Assembly: GCA_907165135.1 (NCBI GenBank)
Contig: OU015568.1
Span: 16,937,208 to 17,001,207 of the forward strand
DNA length: 64,000 nucleotides
Direction: 5' to 3'
Origin: Oikopleura dioica
Lineage: Eukaryota; Animalia; Chordata
The position numbers and the translations under genes are program-made. The stretch's first letter is position 1. Each line of letters begins with the position of its first letter. This document shows positions 1-57,256 of the stretch, in pieces. The notes under the pieces are model-generated. The model was not told the origin of the DNA. It did no database searches and saw only the letters and a list, made by a program, of their open reading frames with translations.

Positions 1-75
1 AGCAAAATCTCCTTTATCCCTCAAGAATTAAAAAATATCATTTTAGAAAGTTCGGTCATTGAATTGTCTTTGGAC

Positions 76-2401
76 TTAATTTTTTGGTGTTGAAGTTTGA
101 ACAGGCTCAACTTCAGATTTTGCTATTTTGGGTAAATGCGAGTCTGCCTCTTCTTTCGACGGTCGCTTGAGGGCTTCTTTGCGCTCAAATTCCTGCTTTT
201 CCCATTGTTTTTCTGCTCTAACGCCGGTAAAGTCATGAACTTCCAGCGTTTTCAGCCACTCCACCATGCTTTCTTCCTCTGAAATTCATTTTTAAGTATT
301 GATAGAAGAGTAGACATACATCTTTTTCCTACTTGAGAAGGCTCAAAATCAAGTCCGGCTAATTGTTTTCCATTCCAATTAAAAGTTCAATCTCACCTGT
401 GTCCATCTTGAAAATGACCGGGAGAATATTTTCCTTTGCAAAATTATCCATGTCACTTTGCTTATCGCTCCATTCTAGCGTCTTGCGGTTGTCCGTCCCG
501 TAATCCTTGTTGTACACATCGTAGTGCACTTGCCGCAGCACTAGTCCATTTCCCGGCGCCTTGGGGACGTCTTCAAAGGGTCTCTTGAACGCTCTCTCCC
601 AATGATCATCCTGGCTAAAAAATCTTGAAAGATTGAATTAGGGAATCGAATGTCTTTGATATTTATTAAAATGCCACGTTTTCGGCGGCCGCATAACCCA
701 ACATAAGCGCCGTGCGAGAACTCTTGCCCGGGGCACCATCGCAAAGCCATTCGTACATCCCTCTCTGCTGGTGCTAGAATTTCAACAAGGGACAACGACA
801 TAACCGCTTATCTCGGCTTTAAAATTTGATAAAACGGGAAATTTTCTCAAAATAAATTTCAAGAGGTTCTCTTCCTTGATTTCAAAAACGATTGTGGCAT
901 TTCCGGAATGCGGCGAATGCTGATAATGAACTTACCAGTGATCCCCGGCTCTGGCAATAACTAATCCAACCATTTTTCTAATCTGGTGGATCATAAAACT
1001 CTGTCCAACAACCCTCAGCTCCACATATTCCCAATCATTGCAGATAAAAGGCTCTCCTTGAATCCGGAAGTCGAGAATGTGTCTCTTTGCCGACTCATCT
1101 CCTTCGAAAAAAAAAGGTCAGCTCAGAAGTTAATCGATAAAATCAGACCTTGACGCTTTCCTGACGTGAAGTTGTGATAAGATTTCGTGCCGGTGTACTT
1201 TTCAAGTAGGCTTTTGACGCATTCAAGTTTCTCGTTTTTTATTCTAAATGAACTTGGTCGATCCCAGTCTTCTTTGCTCCCGAAGCAGATTGTTGGGCAG
1301 TAGTAGCTGTAGGTTCTGTGAGTACATCGCTTCTTTGCGCAAAAGCCTGTTTTTTAGTTGGAAAAATTGAAAATGGAGAAAAATGATGATTCTTCTGAAA
1401 ATTTGCAACTTTCCTTTGGTGACCAGTTCAAAGCCAGTGAGTCGAATATCGTCTGGCAGGTGTTTATTGACCAATTCGCACAGATTTTTCGGAATTTTAC
1501 ACTTCAACGAAGCAACATTCCCGATCGCCGAGACGCCCTAAATAGAGTTGAAATCTGAGATGGAGAAAGAAGTGGAATTTGTGTCTCTGTGATTTTCCCC
1601 TGGGCCGGGCTTTGGCGCTTCTTCTTTCTCAGTCACGGTGATTCTGGCGTAATCCGATTTACGAACGCGTCCAGTTAAAATAATACCGCGCATTATTTTG
1701 TTTAATTCAGCGGGAAATCAACCTTACTGCAGCTGGGCTTGACAGCCTGTGCAGAAAACCTGGGTAAGGGCCTGAGAGATCTAGAATCACTCCAGCCTAT
1801 TTGAAAGATCTGGCGAAGCCGCAAAGCAGCTTCGTTCTTAAAGCCGCTACTCAGCTTGTCATTTAAATCGTTTCAAACCCTGAGTCAGACTCTATTTCTT
1901 TAGCAAGTCTAAATGATTACCTTATCAGTTCTGCTGCAGGATTGATATGCACATTTCTTCCTATCTGTAATAACATTAGAGTAGACAACCTTTGCAGCGA
2001 CAAGGGCCTGGAAAACTCGTTTTTCAATCGTATCGACCTTGTCGTCTCCAGGGTTGTGTTGAAGGCCGTGGTAGTTTTTGCCACAGTATGATAGGAGAAT
2101 CGCGATTTTTTTCTGCAAAGAATGATGATCAGAGTCATTGAATCGCGAAAACTACCTTTGGTCCATCAATAAGAGTCTCCTTATCCTTCAAAGATCCGTT
2201 TCCTCCATCCGTCCACTGCCGCGACTTTTTCTGTTTTACCAAATTTTTGTAATCTTTTTTCGAGCAATTTCTTGGAATCGGAATTGGAACGCCGTTAATA
2301 TCCGTTTCTTCCTTTATTTCTTCCTCTATTTCTTTTTTAACTTCTTCGCTCTTCTCTTCCTTATCTCTATTTTCAGTTTTCTCATCGCTCACATCTGCCA
2401 T
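76..2401 (-). CDS. PUS1: tRNA pseudouridine synthase A / PUS1 (multi-exon)
   Basis: Exons read KKIAILLSYCGKNYHGLQHN...CSRTDK|GVSAIGNVASLK...VTK|GFCAKKRCTHRTYSYYCPT and C-terminal QVHYDVYNKDYG...EWLKTLEVHDF, matching TruA/PUS1 motifs including the RTD catalytic Asp. ATG at 2401 follows ttttgtaga. Confidence 0.92.
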
Positions 2402-2765
2402 TCTACAAAATTAGCGGGTCAGCGTCTCGCTGAATAAATTCTAACTTTATTATGCGGCAGTAAAAAATTTTGCGCCAAAAGGAACTTGCAAGCGCTCTTT
2501 TCTTCTCTTCAAGAATCGCTCAGATATCGCCACAGACCTTTGAAAAGGATCCTTTGTTTACTCCGATTGGATTTACGATTTGGGGATTTATCGGTCCGGG
2601 AGTTGTTGTCGGTAAAATTTTTACTGTCACGATGGTGAAATTAAATACGGCAACTTCTCAGGAAAGAAAACGTCCAAAACCAAAACAACATATTGCCAGC
2701 TGAGCGGGATCTTTTTGTTTTGATGCTTTTCGCGCATTCTTGAAATTTGAAAATTCTGCCTTAAG

Positions 2766-3421
2766 GACCCCCCCATCAAGAATCGCGAAAATAGGGCATC
2801 TTAGTGAAAGTTTTTCTCCAAAACTATCTTAGCTAGACCCTTAATTTTTATTGGATCCTTTAGATCGAACCCTCTACTGCAACCGTTCCCCTTAAGATGA
2901 TCTCTCGACGCCAAATTTAAGGGTATACAGGCCGTTAAAGGTAAAGTTGCTTAGTGAACGTTTTTTTCGGGGTTTTCGTTGGGGTATGCCCTTAATTTTT
3001 TTTTCATGGTAAAGTTAAGGCCCTAAGCTACGACCGTTTGCTTTTTGAGAGTTTTTTGTCTACAAACTTAAGGAGGACAGCCCCTTTAAAATTTTATAAG
3101 TCGAATCTTAGTCGAATTTCAAGATTTACATTTTCAGTAATCATTGCCTAAATTGCCCTGAATTACGTTTTTATACTCGTGTTTATGATAGAAATAGTTT
3201 TTATGGTTGGTAAACCCTTAATTACCATTAAAAAATAGCGAACTAAAGATTTTTATGAAATGTAAAAAGTTAATTTTCAATTTTTGAAGTCAATTTCTGC
3301 CAAAATTTTCTATAAGATCAAAAAAATTTTCTGAATAAAAGTTGTTCCTCGTGGTCAAAACTACCCAAAAAAGCAAAAAAATTTTGAAAATTTTGACTTT
3401 TTTCATCTTGATGGGGGGGTC
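2766..3421. mobile_element. Putative MITE-like insertion with 15-16 bp terminal inverted repeats
   Basis: GACCCCCCCATCAAG (2766-2780) is the exact reverse complement of CTTGATGGGGGGGTC (3407-3421). The interior is AT-rich and non-coding. No convincing TSD. Confidence 0.5.
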
Positions 3422-3999
3422 ACAAGTGTGATTCATTTTCTGCTTTTTCATGAAACAACAAGTGAAATATCTTTTTAGTTAAATCGATATTTTCAGTAAA
3501 AACTTTTTGAAATCATGTTTTTATTAACAAAAACTTTTTTGCATCGGAAAAAATACACTAGAATAAAAAATAATATTGAATGAGCTGTTTTTTTGTACGA
3601 AGACATTGATTGTGTTGCAATTTTTTTCATGTAAACGGATAAAAGATGTTGATAAAAAAACAATTGAACTGTTGGGGATAAGTCTAATAAAGTGACAATA
3701 ATTAAAGTAATTACTTGTTATATTTGTTATTTAGCAATTTTTTTTTTTGGAAAATAAAAAAATGCGAAATTCTGTTTTTTTATATTTGATAAATATAATT
3801 AAATTTAATTTAATTGATACATTGATGAAGGCTGAGGTACATGATAAGAATTTTAGTCTTTTTTCTTTTTTGGATGAATGAATAAGAAAAAAAGAAGAGT
3901 TTACTAGCGAAGATGAGATTTGTGTGATCAGTGGTTGATAGCCTCTTGAATTTGGACGAGGGAATGAACTTGAATGAAGCTAGACGGAAGCAGCTGTTT

Positions 4000-5392
4000 T
4001 TAGGTCTCTGAAGCAGGAATTTGCGGATTTGCGGTGGCTTCTTCTGGCTCGCTATTATCTGAAAAACAGGGCTCAAATCAACTCGTCCCATTTCAAATGT
4101 AATTAGTACCTGGGGAAACATCATCGTCAGCGCAAATTGGACTCGCGGATCTATCAATCTTCCCTTCCTCCGTTTTGATGACTTCGAGCAGTTGATCGAT
4201 TTCAGCCTGGAAAGCTTCATTCGAGAGGTCTTCGTTGATTTCCTCTTTATCCTCTTCTGTTCCCTCGATTTCTTCGTTTTCAATCGGATCAAAGCCGTTT
4301 TCGACGATCGTGCTTGCATTGGACGACAAACTTATCGTGTCTTCGTCTTTTTGAACCGACTGAAAATGATGATTATCAGTTGAAAATAAAATGAGTCTAC
4401 CTCAATCTCTAAAAACGATTCTTCATTTTCCGACCGCTTATTCTCCTCTGCTAGCTCTTTTTGTCGAGAATCAATGGCATTTTTGACCATTGCTTCGATG
4501 AAATCATGGAACGGGGGTCCGTCGACGACAGGATCGGATTCGTCACTGCATTTCTCAGAGCCATCGTTCGAAAGGACGGTGTCATTGGAAGCTGTGCTGC
4601 TAGTTTCTGCCGATTCATCGTCAGATTCATCAGAAACAGCGATTTTGGTGGGCAAAGGGTCGGTTTTTTCAACAGGACTCAGCATATCAAGCTTATGCGA
4701 TCCATTTCGCTGAGAAAGAGCTAACAAGGAGCTAAAATTTTATTGAAAAAAAAGTTGAAAGAGGTAGTTTTACCGAAGACCCTGATTTTCATCTCTAAGT
4801 TGCTTCAACTTCGTTTTAGCTTGAAGATACGAGTCGTTGTCTGTGGGATACTTGCTCGCCGCCATCGTCATAATTGTGATCATGTCTCCAACTCTATCCG
4901 CCAGCTTTTGGTTTTCCTTCTAGGAAAAATGATGAGCAAATTAGTCGGTTCAAAGGGAAGTTGACTTACTCTTAGTTCATAAGTTTTATTCGCAGGAGCG
5001 AGGTGGGATCGCTCCCGCTCCAGTTTAGCTGCGTGAGTCGAGACTTTGCGGAATTTATCCATGACCATTTCTAGCACTGTTTGATGCTCAGCGAGCGCAT
5101 GCCGTAGTTCCTTGTTTTCTGCCATGATCTGAAATCATGGAGGAATCTCCAAAAGAAAAAAAAATAAATGAGACTTACCCGTTTGTTTTTCCGCATTTCC
5201 CGTTTTCCCTGATTGATTATTCTCGGCCTCGCTGGTCCGTTTAAGTTTTCATTCAGCTCGTCGATCTGTTGTACAGTCAGTTTCAAGGGGGAAAGATGGG
5301 AAGTACTGTACCTCATTTTGCGCGGTCATATCGTCGTGAAGACCTTCCGCCATGCTCAAAAGTCTGTCCGCAAAAGAGTCTATTCTCGACAT
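4000..5392 (-). CDS. FGFR1OP2: FGFR1OP2/SIKE-family coiled-coil protein with acidic C-terminal extension; 5' end uncertain
   Basis: ENKELRHALAEHQTVLEMVMDKFRK and KLADRVGDMITIMTMAA...KQLRDENQGLR match the SIKE/FGFR1OP2 pattern. Spliced stop at 4000-4002. Possible further exons near 5480-5850. Confidence 0.75.
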
Positions 5393-6170
5393 TCGTTCTT
5401 CGAGGCAGATATCTCCTCGCAAGTCACGTGACTAATTTGAAGGATTAAAATAAGGTAAAGAGTGAGACTCAAGTAATTACTCTTGATATTTGAATGTTAG
5501 TTGCGTGATTAGTAGAATTGCTCGACTCATGCGATTTTGATTTAGCCGAGATCGAGATTGGCGGTGCTGAGATTATTCGCTTGACTTCAATCTGGTGGAA
5601 AGTGGGATCATCTGCCCCGCGAAAGTGGCCGAAATCAGCTGTTCCTTCCTTTCGAGGATTTGGCAATTTCCGCGACTAAGTTTTGGCAATCAATGATTTT
5701 ATAAATACCATAAGCAAATTGTAATAAGCAAATTGGTGGACTACAAAACGAACTACTGAATGGAACTTACAACCGGTTGTTCCGATGCCTCAGGCAGAAC
5801 CTTGAAACTAGATGTCGTCGACACTGTCACTCGTCGACTCATCTCATCAATCACAAATTCTTAAGAAATAGTGTTAGAACCTTCGGTGCTCATATTTTTT
5901 ATGAATTACACTGAGAGAAGGCTGTGCACCTGCGTGGCCACCGATATTTTTCAATAGTTCAGTTTTCAGGGGAGAGAGAAAAAGGCAGTAAAGAGGAGGA
6001 TGGAAGTTTTTCTGGAAAGTGCTGGCAATACATGTTTTTTCGTTTTTTTTTTTCTCGTCTAAGGGAACGCGCTGCGATTGAGCTTGATTGTTGTCCGGTT
6101 GTTTTTGCCTAATTTCTAAAAATGGGGTTGAAGAAGGGATGAAAAATTATGAAAGAAGGACTTCTGCTAG

Positions 6171-6904
6171 GATGATTTTCGAAAAATGTTTTCAGGCCAG
6201 AAAATCACTTTTTAACTGTTAGTGCCATCTTCACCGCCGTCTCAAACCGAGTCGAACGGTATATGTATCGCTTGAAAATTCTAGAGTTTCGGGTACTTCC
6301 GGTCAGATTTACGAAATTCTAGTATTCCACTGCCGTTTTTGATACAGAAATGGTACTATGGCATATAGCATGTCAAAATGACCGCTAGAACGTGAGGAGT
6401 GCAGGGGTCTCAAAAAATAAGTACTTTTGCAAAGAAAAGTACCTAAAAAAAATTATTTTGTGATATTTTAGCACTAAAAATATCAAATTTGACGGAATTT
6501 TCGATTTAAATGTAGTTTTCTTTGTAGATTTATTTATAAGAGATAAAACTTGATTATACATCTGCTTTCTGCCCGAAAAAATTAATAATTGATATTTTTA
6601 GTGCTAAAAAATCACAAAATAATTATTTTTAGGTACTTTTCTTTGCAAAAGTACTTATTTTTTGAGACCCCTGCACTCCTCACGTTCTAGCGGTCATTTT
6701 GACATGCTATATGCCATAGTACCATTTCTGTATCAAAAACGGCAGTGGAATACTAGAATTTCGTAAATCTGACCGGAAGTACCCGAAACTCTAGAATTTT
6801 CAAGCGATACATATACCGTTCGACTCGGTTTGAGACGGCGGTGAAGATGGCACTAACAGTTAAAAAGTGATTTTTTGCTCTGAAAACATTTTTCGAAAAT
6901 CATC
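6171..6904. mobile_element. Foldback MITE, ~315-bp near-perfect TIRs, 3-bp TSD (TAG)
   Basis: 6171-~6485 is the reverse complement of ~6590-6904 with few mismatches. TAG flanks both sides (6168-6170 and 6905-6907). Confidence 0.9.
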
Positions 6905-24302: not shown

Positions 24303-24327
24303 CTAATTTTGGAAAAATGAAGAATGT

Positions 24328-24441
24328 AACGTAACAAAAAGGTTTTCGTTAGTATGGAACGTAACAAAAAGGTTTTCGCTAGTATGGAACGTAACAAAAA
24401 GGTTTTCGCTAGTATGGAACGTAACAAAAGGTTTTCGCTAC
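24328..24441. repeat. 30-bp tandem repeat, ~3.8 copies
   Basis: Unit AACGTAACAAAAAGGTTTTCGCTAGTATGG repeated head to tail at the host/accessory junction. Confidence 0.92.
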
Positions 24442-24899
24442 AATGTAACCGAAAAAAAGGATAGATGAAAATCTTGATTTTTCTCATTTCTTTGCATAAT
24501 TCCTAATTTGCAAAAATAGATTTTTGGAAAAAAAGAGAAAAATTCCAATTTTGTATATAAAATTCCAAAAAAAGAAAAATTAAATTATGGAAAAAAAAAC
24601 TGGGTTTTCGTAGGCCGGTAGGCCTTCTGCGCCTGCTATGTTTTTTTGCCCTAGGGAACCTGTTTATCATAGCTTAATATCTGTGTCTAATAATTCACTA
24701 TTATTCTGACACTTATTTTCCGCGTCATTTTATTACAGATAGTTGTTGACAGGCTCAGTTTTCCGCATTGTTTATCATTGTCGTATTGTCTCCGCATGTG
24801 TTCAATCTCTATTGCTTGTTGTTATTTTGTGTTTATTTTTTGTTAATGTTACCTTAGTTCTCCATTAGTGGCATGATAACTTCGATTTCACCTGCCCAT

Positions 24900-26123
24900 A
24901 GGGCATCCATCAATTTCAATTTTTTTTTGAACTCATGTAGAAGTCCAACTTGCGTCTTTCGTTCTTCAAGTATTCGTGCGAGATCGTCGTCGTTTATTCC
25001 GATACGTGCAACCTAGAACTTATTTTTGTCGTGTTACAGGTGTATCATACCGTAAGGAGTGTCATCCACGAAGAATATGCCTCATTTAGTCTTGACATCA
25101 GACCTTGTAAACATATTACAACGCTGGCTGGCGTCACAGTTTCTTCACCGTTCACGTATCTATTCAGCTGCACAATCGTTGCATCTGCATATTCATGGAA
25201 TCGAACAAGTACATCGAAAGCTTTTTCAGAGTTCGAAATTTACGCGGCTGCCGTTCGCATCAGAGAGTATATACGGCTGCAAGTGTTAGGATTAAACGAA
25301 TTGACGTTTATGTTTAGCCGCGGAAATATTCTCATGGTGCCGGTGCCTGTTTCGTTTTGTGCAAATGGTGCATTTCGAACTATTACTGGCAGTGAGTTGT
25401 GAACTTCTGTTTTCCATGTTTCCATTTCTCAGTCTTAAAGTTTTTCTATCTGTTTGTTGGTCTATTAATATCCTGTTGCAAGTATGTTCCATGTAGTATT
25501 TCTACTGAAACGAAAGGATACAGTTGTACTTTTACTACAGTAAGTGGCGACTTTATAATGACTTGAATTTGAACTTTTTCAATTTTAGCCGCTTCTCCGG
25601 TGTAGGTTGAATTTGTCGCATTCTTTTTATTCCTTTTTCTTCACGACCAAAGTTACCTTGGGTGGTATTGTCCGAGCCATCTTGTGTCTCGTCGTTTTGT
25701 GGTGCGCCTTAAGTTTCTTTCGCTTGTTTTGTCTATATATTTACCTAAGTCCGCGTGGTTTTCAACAGGCGTTTCTTGGACAACATTTGGCGTCGCTGAT
25801 TTTATTTTATCCAATTATTTCTAAGTACGTCTGTTACCTGAGCCTTCTGGATCTCGGACTTCGTTTTCACCCGTTGGAGCCGATTCTACAGTATCCATGC
25901 GTGTGATGAAAGTGATATCACTCTGATGGAACTTCGTCAGCTGATTACAATCTGGCTCTGGACACCGAAAAACTGGCGGATGTTCTCCTCTTGGGTTGTA
26001 ACCTTCTTGATGGTGGCCTTTTATGGTTCTTATTGTACCGTTTAGTGTATCTATGATTCTCCTATTATTTTGCGGAAAATCCGCAGATTTTTTCACTGAA
26101 AATCCGCGGGAATTTTGGCTCAA
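24900..26123 (-). pseudogene. Orphan multi-exon gene remnant(s) with an in-frame stop
   Basis: ORF 25240-25425 continues in frame past TAA (RTAAA*ISNSEKAFDVLVRFHEY...MTLLT then GT donor). Upstream exon has FRCPEPDCNQ. Confidence 0.35.
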
Positions 26124-26479
26124 TGACGAGTGATTGGCCTGCTTGATTGAAAAAAGAGGCGGAGAATCACGGAAAATAACTTCAATACTGATTGCGTTTA
26201 ATTTCTAAGGTTTAGATGAACCTTGCCTGTGATACAGGTTAAGCAGCAAATATGCTTGCAGTGGAGATTAAGAACTTCTCGTCGAAATTCCTTGTCCAGT
26301 TCCTTTTTGCAAACGTTGCATATATTCAAATCCGTGTAAAATCGATTCATATTGTTCTGAATTTTATTTGTATCAACGACTTATATGTTTCGCCGCGGCA
26401 GTTAGCTACAGTTTAAATATTCGCGTTTAACAGTTATTACGCTTAATTACAGTCACCGCATGAGTTTTCAGATTATTAA

Positions 26480-26929
26480 TTTCAGTTACTCCTCCGCATT
26501 TGATTGTTTCTTTGGTGACTTTTCCTCCAAAGCTTTGATTAAAGTCCGTCCCTCTTCCGCCATCTTTTTCATCTTATCCCATGCAACCATTACTTCGTTC
26601 ACTGGGTGTCCGCTTTCATAAACCATTTCTTTGATTTCGCTTAAGCCTTTCGGTTAAGCCGTAGTTAAATGATTGTTCGCTTACCTCATAGTATTGCGAG
26701 CCATCCCTTTTACATACGCGTCCATGAGTTCTCCATTGAAATAGACTTGCTTTTTCTGCCTTTTAAGCCCGAATTTCAATTGCTCCATCATTTTTTCCTG
26801 TTCTTTTGTCATGCAATGTTTATTACATTTCATTTCCTCCAACTTTACGATGATGAGCTTGAGCTCATCTTCATCTTTTTTGATCAATCCTTCTTCGACT
26901 CCTTTTTTCGCGAGTTTAATTCGTTCCAT
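26480..26929 (-). CDS. Orphan charged protein
   Basis: MERIKLAKKGVEEGLIKK...MARNTMR ends at a gtaagc donor; a downstream exon reads EMVYESGHPVNEVMVAWDKMKKMAEEG. Confidence 0.35.
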
Positions 26930-27044
26930 TGGGAATCGGTCAATCTAAACTATTTTTCTTATGTTTCACTATTTTTTATTAAAGGATAAAGGTTTATTTT
27001 ATAAAAATATAAAAAGAGAATGTTTCGTCTAATCTGAAAAGTAT

Positions 27045-29143
27045 TTAAGATGATTTCAGTTTTTTTAAGAATTGGGGTACAGGATCTCCATTTTTCTCGC
27101 AAGTTTTTATTAATTCTGCCGCGTGTTTCTTGTCTTCTGATGATATGAGACTGATGGCTCTACAGTTTTTCGTTTCGTTGACTATTCGTTCGATTCTATA
27201 CAATATTTGTAATACCTAAATACTGTGGACTTTTACTTACTGATGATTGTAGTCTTTTACTTTAATTGGCAATTCGATATTGAAAATAATGTGCACATTT
27301 ATGATTGGAAGACCTCTCGCGATTCCTTGTGTTCCGACGATCATGCACTTTTGTTTTGTCTAATGATATTTTTACGCTACGTCTTATGAAAGGACGAATG
27401 TTATACATACCATGAGTTCTTGGATTGTTTGATTTCGGTCGTGTTGATTTTTACCTCCGTGGATTGTCATGACTCTGTGTCCGTGTGTGTTGAGAATTCC
27501 TGCGATAATTTCTGCATATTCTCGTGTGTCTGTCAGAATGAGCACTTTTTTGTCTCTTATTTGATCGCAAATTTGTATTGCTCGACTGGCTCTGTATATT
27601 TGTTCTATATGTTCGAAGCTTTGTATTGTTCGAATTAGGGCTGGCAAAGTTGTTAACCTGGTCAAATGGCCTTGACAGCTTTTGGGGTCGGCAAGCCACC
27701 AAGCGATTGTAGGTGGTGATGGGTGGGTTGAGGAGAGAATCAGAAATTTAATTGAAAAAGCTCATCATTTTCACTATTATTTTCGAACCAGCTGGTCATC
27801 GTTTTTATACTCTTTATTTCTCAACTTTATTACTGAGTTACACCTGTTGCCAGTCCTAATTCTGACCAGAGGTGGCCATTCGGGCAAAAAATCGTCTCCT
27901 AGCCGTTCTGAGCCGAGAAATTCAAACTGTCCGGAAAAGCTGCATGACAGTTGGGCAATAATTTTCGATTTGAAGTGAACAGAATCGTGGATAAAAATTT
28001 CGATAGATAGGAGCATGAGGGTAAATATAGTTCAAACTTAGGAATTTTCTTTGGCTGCAGCTTGACTTTCTGTCCGAAATTGCTTAAATTCCCGAAATGC
28101 CCCTTTCTGCCAAATTTTAGCCGTCAGTTTACATGCCGAACACATTTTGCCTTTAAATTACCCGGTGTCGCTGCTCGAATGGTCAACTCTAGTTCGGACG
28201 CTTGTCTGTTTAACGACACCTATCGACAAAAAGACATAGTTTTCTTTAAGGAATCTTGTCGCTTGTTTTTGCAACAATTCATCGAATGTAGATGAAAAGA
28301 TTGCTGTTGTTCTGTCATGACCTTTCCTCTGTCGTAGATACCAGTTGATATCGTTTAGATCTTTATCGAGTCCTTCATCTATCATACAATCCGCGTTATC
28401 CAGAATGAAAAATCGACAAGCTTCGCCGTCAATAACCGCTTCTGATAGCAGGAATTTTATTCGACCCGGAGTACCGATCACGATGTTGCATCCTTCATTG
28501 ATTTTTTTGACTTGTTTTTGAATACTTAATTGAATAAAAATTAAATAAAAATGTCGTTTATACTCTGTTCCACCGCAGACAAGGATCGGAACAATTCCAG
28601 TGTTTTCACAAAACTTGCAGCTTTCACCATATAATTGTGCCGCGACTTCTCTTGTTGGTGAAATAATGATGCAGTCGACTCTTCCGTTTGTGTTAATGAT
28701 CCGTTCTTTAGTATTATTTTTCATTAAATAATTAATAATTGGAATCATCATTGCAGCAGTTTTTCCTGATCCGGTTTGTGCGGTTGCCATCATATCTGTT
28801 CTTTCTGCCAAGATTTTGAATGCGTATTGTTGTATTGGGAAGGGCTGGGCGTATTTCATTCCCCGCAAATTCTCTTGAATTTCTCGGCAAAGATGCATGT
28901 CTTCGAATTTTTCCGCATAGTATTGTTCCGCGACACTTTTAATCTTTCTTTCACTCAGGTCGTATTTCGTGATATTAATTGGGATAGTGTTGAGCTGTGT
29001 CATGGTTCTCCTTTCTATTTCGGCATCTGGTGTCTTAATTTGTTAACTCATGTGTGTCCAACCGAACTTACATGTTTTTGCTTTGAGGTCATTGACATCG
29101 TGCTGGAATTGTTTTTCGCGGATCTATTTAGTAGTCTGTTCAT
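27045..29143 (-). pseudogene. Vasa/DDX4(DDX3)-like DEAD-box helicase with degenerate ATPase motifs, interrupted by a hAT-like MITE
   Basis: INITKYD, FEDMHLC...PFPIQQY, DMMATAQTGSGKTAA, SPTREVA, GGTDIQKQ..GCNIVIGTPGRI, motif II DNAD (28389-28400), SST, IHGGKNQHDR, ARGLP, motif VI YRIERIVN (27177-27200), RAISL...VPQFL. Confidence 0.85.
27636..28191. mobile_element. hAT-like MITE, 556 bp, imperfect 8-bp TSD, inserted in the DEAD-box exon
   Basis: Ends TAGGGCTGGCA... and ...GGTCAACTCTA; flanks GTTCGAAT (27628-27635) and GTTCGGAC (28192-28199). Removing it restores KQTSVRT-IQSFEHIE in frame. Confidence 0.78.
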
Positions 29144-32485: not shown

Positions 32486-32602
32486 GGGTGAGGCCCATTA
32501 GGTGTAAATCCCATTAGGTGTAAATACCCATTTAGTGTAATTTTCTAGAAGGTGTAACACACCTAATAGATATTTACACCTAATGGGTATTTACACCTAA
32601 TT
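32486..32602. repeat. Left TIR of the MULE, made of CCCATTAGGTGTAAATA-type repeats in both orientations
   Basis: Three forward units, a central TTTTCTAGAA, then about three reverse units; matches the reverse complement of 41297-41413. Confidence 0.9.
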
Positions 32603-34017: not shown

Positions 34018-35883
34018 TCAGGTACCAATCATTAATTCGCCAGTGGATATGCACGCTGCCAAATTTAGTCGTAAATTTTTGGAGCTCTCCTTGAGTTTTG
34101 TTGAATAGTTCTCCAGATTTAGGCACACGATGAAAAATAATCCATACGCCACATTAATGCCGCAGTCCATGTATTTTTGTTTTGGGCATTTTTGATATAT
34201 AGGAGCCCAGTCCTTTTCGTCTTCTTCGAATACTTCAAGAAACACTTAATTAAATTTCCAATTGCGCTTATGATACGGTTAATTAATCTAATATTTTTTG
34301 AAATTTGCCTTGATAGACATCTCCATAATCTTCGAAATTCAAAGAGTCGTAAATTGTAAATATTTTTTCCTCTCTATCCGCCTTGACAATTATCCAGTGT
34401 CCAACTCGACCAGGGATAAAGACAGGGCAAACAAATCGTTTTATTTCTGATGGATGATAACCAGTACCAGCAAAATTTTTTCCTTGAAAGACCATTTGTG
34501 AGAATTTCGTGTCTTCAAGAATAATATCATTAGTTTGGTGTTGCTGTTGGTAATGTCTCATAATGATGATAAACAAGTCCAGAATTTTGTCTTTTGTTTC
34601 TGTTCGAAGTTTGTAAAGTGGCAACAGATCTCGGACGCGAACTTCCTCCTTTTCTATTAAATTGACCAGCTGTCCTTCAGGCCATTTTTGTATATTTTTA
34701 GCGATATTTTCTGCTTCAAATGACATCTTGTAGCCATTAAACTTTTCAAACTTGAAAGTTGGAGTTTTGAACATTTTTCTATCAAGCTCGTTTTCGTAAC
34801 TCATTGCATTTTCAGATTCCTCAAGAAGAATGGAATTGGACGATTCATCGTTGTTTGTTGCTGACTTAACTTCTGTGTATTCCGCGGCTTCTTCAAGGAC
34901 ATCAATACGACGCTTTTCTTCCTTGATTTCATCTGTTTTCCTCACAAAGGCGCCGCTATGCTCGCCCATTGCTGGAAGGTTCTCTTCGTTGATTTCATGA
35001 CCAGGTGAGCCCTTTTTCTTTTTTGCGTTTTCTTCTTTCTTTTCGACCAAATTGAAATTCATTCCAGCGAGAAAAGTCTCAAACACTGGATTTCTGCGAT
35101 CCAGGTCACAAAGGAACTTGTCAAGTGCGTCTTTTGAAGAGAGTAATCTTTTTGCCTCGGTCGACGCCCCTTTTAGATCTTTTGAAGTCGATATTACAAG
35201 CTTTTTCAGCTCAGCATGGCTTATTTTTAGAGGCATGGAAGAAGACTGTCGATCCAACTTTCGATAGAATCGTTGCATAGCGTTAAATTTAACCATCCAT
35301 GTTGTACCAGTTTTTTGCGTTGTTTTTATTGGCCATTTTCCATCTTCAAGATAGCTCAACTCATCGTTAAACGTCGTTTTCTTGCGATTTGTGATCACTT
35401 TGCAAAGCTCTTGAACATCAGGCTTAGACTGCAGACCGCGCAAGAGTCGTGCATTTACACTCTCGCTTAATCTTGGTTCATCGTTGATTTCAAAAGTTAA
35501 TTGATATTTTAGAAACGAGTCAAGCTGTTGTTGTCGCTGGTCATGAAGCTGATGAGAAGCGCTGCTCAATTCGAATAAAAATAGAGAGACCGTGGTCGAA
35601 ATCATGGAGAAAAATTTAGGTAAAAAATGATCAAACCAAGCCTGGCGTTATTAGTGCTATCGATTTCCCCAGTTTTGATCATATTGGATGATTTATCGGC
35701 CCATTCACTAGGCTTGAATGTGGCGTCTTCGTTGAAATAGTTCTTGAGGAGGTAGTCGCGATAAGCAATCCATCCATTCTTCTTTTTCTTCTTTTCGCCG
35801 TCATCAACATCCACCTTTTCTTTCGCGTTTTCGTCATCATCAACATCCACCTCTTTTTTCGCGTTTTCGTCATCAACATCCAT
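34018..35883 (-). CDS. Ulp1/C48 SUMO-type cysteine protease (element-encoded)
   Basis: 440-aa ORF ending FVCPVFIPGRVGHWIIVKADREEKIFTIYDSLN, plus a last exon CPKQKYMDCGINV, giving the His-Asp-Cys triad and the oxyanion Gln. Confidence 0.85.
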
Positions 35884-54120: not shown

Positions 54121-57100
54121 TTACAATCTCGATTTACTTCGCTGTCCGTACAGGCAGCGAACAAATCCCGAAATAATAAGTAACTGCGTTTCATTGTAAT
54201 TCCACTTCTTCATTCTCGCAATGAATCGCAAATTGGACATATTCGCAGGGAAGTTTTTGCTCGCGTCTTTCAAGTTTTGCGCGATCTCCGTTATTTTTTC
54301 TGCTTTATGTCACAACTAAGTCTTTGTTGTTATTCGAATTATTGCTGATTACATTATTAATTCTGACATTCCTGCTGTCAAATCGCCGAGACCAAAATCT
54401 TCCAGCTGTATGGGTTTACCACATGCTATGACTTCCGACATGATGCCGGCGATTCGGTCGTGCGTGGCGTGTTCTTTCAGCGCGATTTGCTCGATGGTTT
54501 CTCCATCAAGGTAGCGTTTGTAAATCATCCAGCTGCGCAATCGCAGTTCTTCGTGAGCTTTATTCAGATTTTAACTAGTCGGCTGGTTTTTACTTACGTT
54601 TTTTTTGCGCCCAGGTTTTTGGTGGGTTTTTCATCATTTCATAGGTAGCGTCTTCTTCCTCGTAGATTTGTCTATCTACCTCAAGCTCTGGGCAAAGATT
54701 CTTGTATTTTGCTGTGTTCAGATAGAAACTCTGGTACATTTTGGCCGCCGCTGCTGTCATTCTTGGAATTTTACACACTAAATAAGTTTTATTTTTTTTT
54801 CTTCTAGGGACGCTACTTGATTCTTCCGTTGTGGGCCGCCATAATATAACTCGTTCCAATAGCTCTCTGCTGAAAGGAAGTTGCGGCTTTTTACGATCTT
54901 TGTATTGCTGCGTCACATCCTCCATAATTGCGTACATCATCTTTCGATATGATCTTTCATACGCGTCCTCCTTTTTTTTCTGTGGCTCTTCAGCTCTGAA
55001 GATTTCTATCTTGCCGAACACTGCGTTCTCTTCTTCCTTCTGTGCCTTCAGTTCGCCTTCTGTTTCCATGATACAGTCGCGGCTTCCTTTAGAAATTATT
55101 CTTGGCGTTTTCATCTCAGTTGTCAGCACTTTTTGTATTTGTTATAAGCAGTTTCAAGATTGACTTACCCGTGATGAATTTTTTTTTGGGCGACTGCATA
55201 AAATCGTACCCCTTTAGCGACACAACCATTCGAATCGCTCCTTCTCCATCATAATGCCGAAGATTGAGGTAGTCATTAATGATGAGCGCCCTTGTAACCG
55301 CATAAAAGTGTTTTTTCTATAAAGTCGGTTTATCAAGTTAACTTTTTTTAGACATACCGGTTTCATTTTCTTTAGGACATTAGCCATTGTTGCTTTTTCC
55401 TTGCAATCAATAACCGCCTCCATTATGATTATTGCGTCGTTTCTGAGAGAAACATAGTGTTTCAACTCAGCTTTATATTCTTATCAAGGATAAAATAGCT
55501 CGATTCTTTATTTTGGTATTTTATGTTAATTCTTCATTATCTATATTCCCTTTACTTTGTTCCGCGACAATTCTTCATTCTCCCGACGGCAATGATCGCA
55601 GCAGTTTGGAAGGCCCGTTGTTTCAGACTCTTCTCCTCTATTGAATGTCGCCAGTAGGGTTTCTCGGAGACAACCTCGCTGTTTCAATGCGTATTCGCAA
55701 TGAAATAATTCCAAGTATTTTTGTATCTTCTCTTCCGTTCTAGGTTGTCTACTCGCGGTTGACTTGTGAAAAGAAGTAAGCTCATCATTCATAAATATGA
55801 TCGTTTGAGATTGTTCTCCGTTTCGTCCGCATCGTCCGCTCATTTGACTGAGCGATGAGAGTGATAAAGGTGTTCCCCAAAGAACTGAATTTTAAATTTG
55901 GTTTTAGGTGAATATGTTTACCCGTCTTTCGCAATGTCCGATCATCATGACCCATGCCGAACGCAACGGTTGCGATTATCGCGTCAAGTTTGCCTTGCGT
56001 GAAATCTTTGACCGTTTGCCTTCTTTGTGCATCATTTACCCGCGGCGCATTCTTTGCAGAATCATTCTTCGACGATCTTAAAGAAAAATAAAACAAAATT
56101 AATAATTTATATAGTACCCGAAGTATTTTCCGAATCTTTGCATGTCGAAAAATCGGCTAAGATTATCGTATAGAAATTCGCCTTCATTTCTCACATTGAT
56201 GTATATGAGAACTCGTTCCTTTAGCCGATAGAGCTGTCGGTTGCTGAATTACCGTTTTGTAAGAATTTATCGTTATATTATACTTGATTATTTTGTCGGG
56301 TTTAACAAGTCCAGCTCTCTTCAAATCATTAAACAAGGCCTCTGCCGATGCTTGTTTTGAGTTGTTTCTTGCCGCATTTGTCTTCGTTAGAATTCTGTAG
56401 TAGATATTCTTTCGGTCAGTTGCGCCTTTTATTATCTTGGGCTAAATTATTTTATTTATTTGCTTCAACTCAAGTTTATCTTACTTGTGTCATCCGCAAT
56501 GTCTTCTTGATCCCTCTTTCGACGTGTTTTGTAGCTGTGGCAGTACACGCTAGAAATGGTGCACTCGCTATTTCTCTAGCAAAACCGAGAAATTTCATCT
56601 CAGTTCTGAACGAGCTCCACTCAATGCATGTATGCACTAAATAAAGTTAATGTTAATTACTGTCCCGAAGAGTAGATTTACCCTCGTCAAAGATAGCCGC
56701 TTTCATGGGGTGATGTTCGTTGAGAAGCTGGAGCACAAGATGGTTTTTGTTCAAGCTTTCAGGAGATGCAAAGATGACGCGATAGTTTCGTAGCCTCTTC
56801 CACTCTTTTATGGCCGCCCATTCAAGAAAATTTGTGTCTCTCAATTTAGTTTGGCTGATTCCAGAGTGATCCAGAAACGTCATCATGTCTTCGCGAATGT
56901 TGTTAACCGGAAGAACAATCAACGTATATCCTGTTTGTTGCAGAGCCGCGTAGGTGAGAAATACTGCAGATTTTCCGCTTCCTGTGCACTGTACTATCAA
57001 AGTATCTTTTCCCGCACCCAATGCTTCGATCGCTTCATACTGCCAGCTCCGCATATTTTGGTGGCCCATCACTTCTTTAAATGTTTTCTTGACGATTTTG

Positions 57101-57183
57101 TATTGTTCTTCTGCGGTTAATAATGGATCCCCGAAAAAAACTTCTGGAGCTTCGTTCGACTCATTCGACCGATTTTCGTTCAT
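54121..57183 (-). CDS. WRN-like RecQ helicase (helicase core, Zn/RQC, HRDC-like, C-terminal HTH; no exonuclease domain)
   Basis: GHQNMRSWQYEAI, QCTGSGKS, ASPE, DE|VHTCIEWSSFR, ACTATAT, VLIYINVR, IIATVAFGMG, QMSGRCGRNG, CLRETLLATF...CCDHC, RALIINDYL...SLKG, RPTT, YLDGETIEQIA...GKPIQLEDFGL. The exons I could trace splice in frame. Confidence 0.85.
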
Positions 57184-57256
57184 TCTTAATGTGAAAATGA
57201 TTTTATAATTTGTTTCCAATCAATCAGTCATTCTGTCAATGTTCTCTCCAATTCCA

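Follow-up and report, generated by a model that had tools for sequence, protein, structure and literature searches.

An interrupted, fast-evolving duplicate of Oikopleura dioica vas2 that has lost catalytic residues of its DEAD-box core

When a DEAD-box core does not turn over ATP, it can clamp RNA stably, as eIF4AIII does in the exon junction complex, where all of its motifs are present and it is inhibited by partner proteins. Clamping by DQAD mutants of Vasa-type helicases, in which the catalytic glutamate of motif II is replaced by an amide, depends on an otherwise intact ATP site. Mutants of this kind have been engineered in Vasa, MVH and GLH-1 (PMC5481186, PMC9887883 and PMC9463143). They are laboratory changes of a single residue in full-length proteins, and neither motifs V and VI nor the termini are affected. 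In Utp25/Def, a validated DEAD-box-like pseudohelicase, the two-RecA DEAD-box fold is combined with degenerate catalytic motifs, and its known function is independent of them (PMC9539457); this protein is ancient, essential, eukaryote-wide and nucleolar. Here we describe a vasa-like gene on the minus strand of a 64,000-nucleotide (nt) stretch of DNA (the window) from OU015568.1, a pseudo-autosomal region (PAR) scaffold of the OKI2018_I69 assembly of Okinawa O. dioica. The gene occupies positions 27045–29143 of the window (OU015568.1:16,964,252-16,966,350, with record position equal to window position + 16,937,207) and lies ~126 kb from the scaffold end. Like the DQAD mutants, it has an amide in place of the catalytic Glu, and in RecA1 the motifs for RNA binding, the P-loop and the Q motif are all intact. 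It differs from them in that the amide is a natural Asn and not Gln, and in that two Arg of motif VI, the Asp of motif V and much of RecA2 have been lost as well. In contrast to eIF4AIII it is without catalytic residues, and in contrast to Utp25/Def it is young, lineage-restricted and known from sequence alone. We favour the reading, with a probability of about 0.5, that it is a fast-evolving, non-catalytic duplicate of O. dioica vas2 that was long kept protein-coding and is now interrupted, the sequenced allele most likely being a young null or truncated one.

A three-frame translation of the minus strand from 29143 to 27045 gave a DEAD-box helicase core spread over a few open reading frames (ORFs). 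The largest of these, 281 amino acids (aa) long at 29003–28158, matched Pfam DEAD (PF00270) with E=6.6e-31, and Helicase_C (PF00271) scored 26.9 bits (cut-off 23.5) on the exon at 27384–27665 and 15.7 bits on the next exon. The top matches among solved structures were planarian, Bombyx and Drosophila Vasa and human DDX3X, with E=1.6e-41 to 3e-35. A preliminary description of this DNA had placed a Vasa/DDX3-type DEAD-box gene here, which these matches bear out, and the signature strings that it listed (INITKYD, FEDMHLC, DMMATAQTGSGKT and GCNI) are all present. We modelled five exons and four GT-AG introns of 38, 39, 51 and 45 nt, giving a 453-codon frame with its stop at 27045 once an insertion in exon 3 is excluded. 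With these introns removed the frame is open and no stop occurs outside the insertion, as had been described.

The model was built from the sequence, and exon 1 (29072–29143, MNRLL...KQKH) with its start codon is putative; TTAAG lies directly 5′ of this ATG, and an alternative ATG is found at 29003. Intron 1 (29034–29071, 38 nt, GTAAGT...TTAAG) is likewise putative. Exon 2 (28564–29033) encodes the Q motif, motif I (AQTGSGKT, 28781–28758), PTRE and GG, and is followed by intron 2 (28525–28563, 39 nt, GTATAA...TTAAG). The first part of exon 3 (28192–28524) carries TPGR, the motif II sequence DNAD and SST, and runs to the linker SIGVVKQTSVRT, its final 5 nt, CGAAC, being one copy of a direct repeat. 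The second part (27411–27627) opens RecA2 (IQSFEHIEQ...IHGGKNQHDRNQTIQELM), with a degenerate motif IV and a conserved QxxR. Beyond intron 3 (27360–27410, 51 nt, GTATGT...CATTAG), exon 4 (27241–27359) contains motif V as TQGIARGLP and the start of motif VI, that is, the His and the first two bases of the Gln. Intron 4 (27196–27240, 45 nt, GTAAGT...GTATAG) separates it from exon 5 (27045–27195), which holds the remainder of motif VI (QIERIVN, 27195–27177), a C-terminus ending in ...VPQFLKKLKSS without an acidic Trp-containing tail, and the stop. About 40 residues stand ahead of the helicase core, and none of them is RGG. No RGG ORF was found upstream of the gene, and the Vasa-specific acidic Trp tail was absent in any frame before the next gene. 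An AATAAA signal is located at 26993–26998 on the minus strand, 47–52 nt 3′ of the stop, and the next minus-strand ORF begins at 26929.

The core was aligned with vas2 and with 12–30 other Vasa, DDX3 and Ded1 proteins, and it was collinear with them without indels. The alignment confirmed the earlier statement that the Q motif (F, PIQ), the Walker A motif (motif I, AQTGSGKT), PTRE (Ia), GG and TPGR (Ib) of RecA1 are kept. Beyond these, motif II keeps both of its outer Asp, motif III its Ser and Thr, and motif V its Thr and Arg-Gly-Leu, and QxxR is likewise unchanged. Motif II, canonically DEAD, reads DNAD (GAT AAC GCG GAT, 28400–28389), and around it DEADRMLD has become DNADCMID; moreover, SAT has changed to SST, IHGD to IHGG and ARGLD to ARGLP (27320–27306). 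DNAD and ARGLP had both been noted before, as had a degenerate motif VI. The motif VI sequence given then, YRIERIVN, proved to be an unspliced read through intron 4; the spliced motif is HQIERIVN (canonical HRxGRxGR), because the intron matches that of vas2 in position and phase (CAC AG/.../A ATC in vas2 and CAT CA/.../A ATC here, with slashes at the splice sites). The changes amount to R404Q, G406E, G409V and R410N, which remove two of the three Arg and both Gly but spare His, Ile and the middle Arg. Motifs Q, I, II and VI act on ATP, and motifs Ia, Ib, GG, IV, QxxR and V on RNA (PMC9539457 and established knowledge). Judged by these residues, binding of nucleotide and RNA by the protein appears plausible, and it can hardly hydrolyse ATP, because the Glu of motif II and two of the three Arg of motif VI are lost.

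Contrary to the earlier suggestion, the loss is not confined to the ATP-hydrolysis motifs. Among 126 columns that were at least 93% invariant in 30 reference proteins (75 in RecA1 and 51 in RecA2), the vasa-like gene kept 53/75 in RecA1 and 22/51 in RecA2 (Fisher p=0.003), compared to 65/75 and 43/51 in vas2. RecA2 is thus degenerate as a whole, and despite this it has remained collinear with vas2, without indels.

Full-length identity was 42% to O. dioica vas2 (CBY18436.1) and at most 33% to all other proteins, and no relative outside the O. dioica vas2 cluster (fragments and CBY18436.1 itself) exceeded 40% identity. Olsen et al. 2018 (PMC5830320) named four vas genes, vas2 among them, and their supplement contains nothing on the motifs of vas1, vas3 and vas4. 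In a phylogeny against vasa and PL10, which the preliminary description had recommended, the vasa-like gene was sister to vas2 with support of 100/100, and its terminal branch of 1.57–2.46 was ~7x longer than the ~0.2–0.3 of vas2. The clade of the pair differed between trees: a quick tree under a mixture model placed it inside the Vasa clade (SH-aLRT 97), whereas a careful LG+G4 tree left the long-stemmed pair outside both the Vasa and the PL10/DDX3 clades. The two genes have lineage-specific strings in common (MATAQTGSGKTAAMMIPIINY, GCNIVIGTPGR, VDCI and KFC). Three introns stand at vas2 intron positions as seen in genomic contigs, and their phases agree where checked: intron 2 at the same site (after GGT), intron 3 with the position and phase of the vas2 intron after INDLK, and intron 4 with those of the vas2 intron inside HR/IGRTAR. 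Because these three positions are kept, the gene is a duplicate made at the DNA level and not a retrocopy. The neighbours of vas2 in the Bergen genome are different, and nothing else in that neighbourhood is common to the window; the vasa-like gene is thus a paralogue at another locus, and positional orthology with vas2 is ruled out.

The differences from vas2 are equally marked. vas2 has canonical DEAD, SAT, ARGID and HRIGRTAR where the vasa-like gene has DNAD, SST, ARGLP and HQIERIVN, and the ~480-aa RGG N-terminus and the acidic tail ...DAESEW of vas2 are both missing here. Moreover, vas2 is intronless at the site where the coding exon of the vasa-like gene carries its insertion. In Drosophila, the equivalent of the acidic Trp-ending tail is found only in Vasa and is needed for function (PMC4400588).

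Three vas2 lineages of the O. dioica type, deeply diverged from one another, were found in public metagenomes and read assemblies (synonymous divergence, dS, of 0.5 for A–B; proportion of synonymous differences, pS, of 0.70–0.76 for A–C and B–C), and all three had canonical motifs. The vasa-like gene was slightly closer to lineage C (aa identity of 0.49 versus 0.46; three-point branches of nonsynonymous divergence, dN, of 0.37, 0.02 and 0.11). As to when the gene was duplicated, the approximately unbiased (AU) test rejected neither a position outside all vas2 (p=0.39) nor a sister position to lineage C (p=0.30).

Compared to all three public vas2 lineages, synonymous sites were saturated (pS 0.72–0.80, with a proportion of nonsynonymous differences, pN, of 0.30–0.42), and pN/pS was higher in RecA2. 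Okinawa-Bergen orthologs have a dS of ~1.4. The GC content at third codon positions (GC3) was 0.37 in the vasa-like gene and 0.51 in vas2. Neutral substitution was then simulated on the present coding sequence (CDS) in 2000 runs, and the chance that no stop arose was calculated. For the full CDS this chance was 0.05 at 0.05 substitutions/site, <0.005 at 0.1 substitutions/site and 0/2000 runs at 0.2 substitutions/site or more; for RecA2 alone it was 0.055 at 0.15 substitutions/site. In addition, of the 43 invariant residues that vas2 keeps in RecA2, 22 are lost here, which exceeds the estimated ~29% allowed at 0.15 substitutions/site (p=0.002). Because of this bound on decay and the excess loss in RecA2, the greater part of the divergence, and of the motif loss with it, arose under an open frame. 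Neutral decay beyond ~0.05 substitutions/site is rejected for the full CDS, and the gene shows long-term selection for an open frame. The earlier view that the divergence is not plain pseudogene decay was thus upheld, since the four introns and all 453 codons remain intact at a pS against vas2 of 0.72–0.74.

The linker between the two RecA domains is interrupted within the coding exon by an insertion of 559 nt (27633–28191, minus strand), flanked by direct repeats of CGAAC at 28196–28192 and 27632–27628 that resemble a 5-bp target-site duplication. Deletion of the insertion together with one CGAAC copy gives a linker of exactly the length found in vas2. Because excision restores collinearity with vas2, and vas2 has no intron there, this is an insertion into a coding exon. 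It brings in an in-frame TAA (28158–28160) after 10 extra residues, which would leave a 302-aa RecA1-only product. The preliminary description had called it a miniature inverted-repeat transposable element (MITE), and an interrupting insertion with a 5-bp repeat is indeed present; classic terminal inverted repeats were not found in it, nor was a second copy within the 64-kb window or the fetched loci. Instead of pairing with each other, the ends pair with adjacent central segments. The 5′ end (28172–28193) is complementary to 27865–27886 at 18/22 positions and the 3′ end (27632–27647) to 27847–27862 at 15/16 positions, so that the two halves of a central segment (27847–27886) pair with the two ends; such a pair occurred in 0/60 shuffles. 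Searches with Rfam and for tRNAs gave no match to the insertion, ruling out a known RNA or a tRNA-derived short interspersed element, and a special overall fold was unsupported, as the fold energy was ordinary (z=0.06).

The nearest described counterparts are the MITE-derived introns of the appendicularian Fritillaria borealis (Henriet 2019, as summarised in PMC11282704). As with these, we see an appendicularian coding-exon insertion at a species-specific position, with a short direct repeat and internal pairing that joins the ends. The F. borealis introns are abundant, with terminal inverted repeats, AG-AC or AG-AT ends and demonstrated splicing, whereas the insertion described here is single-copy in the window and fetched loci, pairs end-to-centre, lacks such ends and is described from its sequence only. 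Precise excision would need an intron with the ends CG..TT, GA..TC, AA..CG, AC..GA, CT..AA or TA..AC, none of which finishes in AG. Non-canonical introns of O. dioica reportedly still end in AG, as Denoeud and colleagues are said to have found in 2010. Non-canonical introns make up 11% of all introns in OKI2018_I69 (PMC8008620).

Orthologs were sought with the RecA1 ORF and with a profile of vas2 plus the ORF in word-indexed searches, in an all-length representative library, by exact look-up and in a metagenome scan. None was found in those searches, which returned only vas2 and generic Vasa/DDX3 proteins. No product of the locus was present among the indexed proteins (searches at 155–870 aa and the all-length library), though OKI2018_I69 proteins are indexed, and an exact-sequence look-up of the 281-aa ORF gave no record. 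No transcript-derived fragment of the locus appeared in the searches, whereas vas2 was found repeatedly. The OKI2018_I69 annotation was made with AUGUSTUS and RNA-seq (PMC8008620), and it probably carries no model at the locus.

The ORFs within 7 kb on either side of the gene encode a coiled-coil protein, a RING-like finger, a C2H2-like finger and a Cys-rich protein; no transposon domains or transposon ORFs were found among them. Long terminal repeats (LTRs), long flanking direct or inverted repeats and terminal repeats were absent from 22–36 kb of the window, and the 64-kb window held no further vasa-like paralogues or element copies. A VCIP135-like neighbour ORF was 99% identical to an OKI2018_I69 protein and 88% identical to a Bergen protein. 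The Okinawa VCIP135 locus that we fetched was 100% identical to window 3757–26390 and ends 650 bp short of the vasa-like gene. The SIKE...UCH-VCIP135-BSD-RRM block is syntenic between Okinawa and Bergen, and this synteny ends ~6 kb before the vasa-like gene, upstream of the RRM gene. No helicase remnant was found on the Bergen side of the breakpoint. When window ~21000–26400 was compared to the Bergen locus at 1–6000, nothing was common upstream of the RRM gene; the vasa-like gene is located past the breakpoint.

How these results fit together can be outlined as follows. A lineage-restricted duplicate of vas2, copied at the DNA level, evolved ~7x faster than vas2 and shed both its RGG N-terminus and the C-terminal tail specific to Vasa. 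RecA1 stayed fairly conserved (Q motif, P-loop, Ia, GG and Ib) as the Glu of motif II was replaced by Asn and motif VI lost two Arg, and RecA2 became broadly degenerate, although QxxR remained, as did Arg-Gly and the Thr in motif V. Selection maintained the frame and the small introns through most of this divergence, and the product over this long time may have been a pseudo-helicase that probably bound ATP and RNA without hydrolysis or cycling. The linker exon was then hit by the 559-nt insertion with its in-frame stop, and the locus is most likely a pseudogene in the making, with neutral decay since the interruption of at most ~0.05–0.15 substitutions/site. The pseudo-helicase proposed in the preliminary description may thus be correct for the past of the gene, whose frame was kept and whose catalysis was lost, but for the present it is less likely, as the allele is interrupted by a stop-bearing insertion. 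Several observations count against this outline. The branch omega was not estimable, owing to saturated synonymous sites and a comparison without Okinawa vas2, and the missing gene model was deduced from protein searches and not from a gene table of the locus. RecA2 3′ of the insertion is still open (147 codons) with two intact GT-AG introns, and because of this the insertion is either recent or removed from the transcript. Finally, a GTAAT donor overlaps the stop, and splicing from GT(28161) to AG(27658), with a CAG acceptor, would remove most of the insertion in frame and add 20 aa to the inter-domain linker. As evidence for function, such an in-frame cryptic splice is uninformative, since 30/110 of the GT/GC-AG pairs around the insertion are in frame.

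If the insertion were indeed removed, by that splice or as a transposon-derived intron, the gene would be a currently functional pseudo-helicase that binds ATP and RNA without turnover and has a germ-cell role as clamp, decoy or scaffold. We regard this, the chief alternative, as possible but doubtful. The frame and both introns 3′ of the insertion are intact, the ends of the insertion pair with its central segments beyond what shuffles produce, the ATP-binding and most RNA-binding residues are kept with the catalytic ones lost, 11% of the introns in this genome are non-canonical, and MITE-derived introns have an appendicularian precedent (PMC11282704). However, in-frame site pairs are common, precise removal needs ends that do not finish in AG, the fold energy is ordinary and no product of the locus was present among the indexed annotation proteins. 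The more specific proposal, in which selection in the Okinawa lineage maintains a hydrolysis-dead Vasa paralogue as a germ-cell module that binds RNA or a partner without cycling, with the insertion removed as a transposon-derived intron via its end-to-centre helices, appears unlikely. A different product would result if translation simply ended at the TAA, the 302-aa RecA1-only protein being what was selected and RecA2 a decaying 3′ untranslated region. The much better conservation of RecA1 and the higher pN/pS in RecA2 would both fit, and an open RecA2 frame is consistent with neutral drift of up to ~0.15 substitutions/site. The loss of invariant residues in RecA2 exceeds that same bound (p=0.002), so most of the change in RecA2 predates any release from constraint. 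Both RecA2 introns also keep GT-AG, and two introns and more than 1 kb would separate the stop from the poly(A) signal further 3′. A stop far upstream with downstream introns normally marks an mRNA for decay, and all told we consider a RecA1-only product quite unlikely.

The preliminary description had gone further and suggested an element-encoded, or otherwise selfish, anti-silencing factor, a dominant-negative Vasa that would clamp RNA and trap piRNA amplification complexes. An amide in place of the motif II Glu, as in the engineered DQAD mutants, suggested this, and the fast evolution is seen in many germ-line conflict genes; in addition, O. dioica has Piwi and active Tor elements (PMC4402516). 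The gene was, however, found without transposon context: flanking LTRs and terminal repeats are absent, the 7 kb to each side contain no transposon ORF, its neighbours are host genes, and the VCIP135 block is syntenic with Bergen. Nor does the protein resemble a DQAD clamp beyond motif II, as two Arg of motif VI, the Asp of motif V, the Asp of IHGD and more than half of the RecA2 invariants have changed, the RGG region and the tail are lost, and the allele is interrupted. Nothing supports this explanation beyond the motif II amide, we judge it very improbable, and any link of the gene to PIWI proteins or piRNAs would be purely conjectural. At the opposite extreme, the motif changes would be random decay in an old, dead, unprocessed pseudogene. 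The very long branch, the degenerate RecA2, the interrupting insertion, the lack of an annotated gene as deduced from protein searches and the lower GC3 than in vas2 all agree with such an origin. Against it, the frame runs through 453 codons with neither stop nor frameshift, and all four introns keep GT-AG, even though synonymous divergence is saturated, whereas the simulated chance of remaining stop-free falls below 0.005 at 0.1 substitutions/site and to 0/2000 runs at 0.2 or more; an old pseudogene is thus extremely improbable. We therefore retain the reading of a vas2 duplicate that was long kept protein-coding and recently interrupted, from which we infer both a past non-catalytic function and present inactivity.

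If it is only a recently disabled duplicate, the gene would be what ordinary turnover of gene families leaves behind in a genome that evolves very fast, and an example of a duplicated germ-line helicase in which catalysis was lost and the open frame was long kept. Expression and conservation of the gene would make it a new pseudo-helicase and the first counterpart in nature of the DQAD Vasa mutants with which piRNA amplification is dissected. With its structure, the insertion is a case on which conversion of transposons to introns could be tested in O. dioica.

Several other features were observed in the window. A tRNA-Val (AAC) gene lies at 21034–21106 on the minus strand, between the gene for the RRM protein and the Cys-rich gene and near the end of the synteny. 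In the gene flanks, a 30-nt tandem repeat of ~4 copies was found at 24321–24458 and a palindrome with 43-nt arms and a 3-nt spacer at 32513–32601. An inverted repeat of 316 nt, 98% complementary and with a 102-nt spacer, is located at 6171–6904 within the span of an annotated 222-aa gene. A second helicase-like ORF at 56653–57219 (minus strand) matched Pfam DEAD at 1.3e-12 as well as ResIII; by eye it appears RecQ-like (TGSGKS...FDE), and it is unrelated to the vasa-like gene. The 440-aa ORF at 34283–35605 (minus strand) had no Pfam match, and its C-terminus (...GHWIIVKAD...IYDSLN) by eye resembles the core of an Ulp1/SENP-type protease. One end of the pseudo-autosomal scaffold is without a telomere, and the window as a whole lies 91–155 kb from it; according to the assembly paper this end is assumed to join the sex-specific regions.

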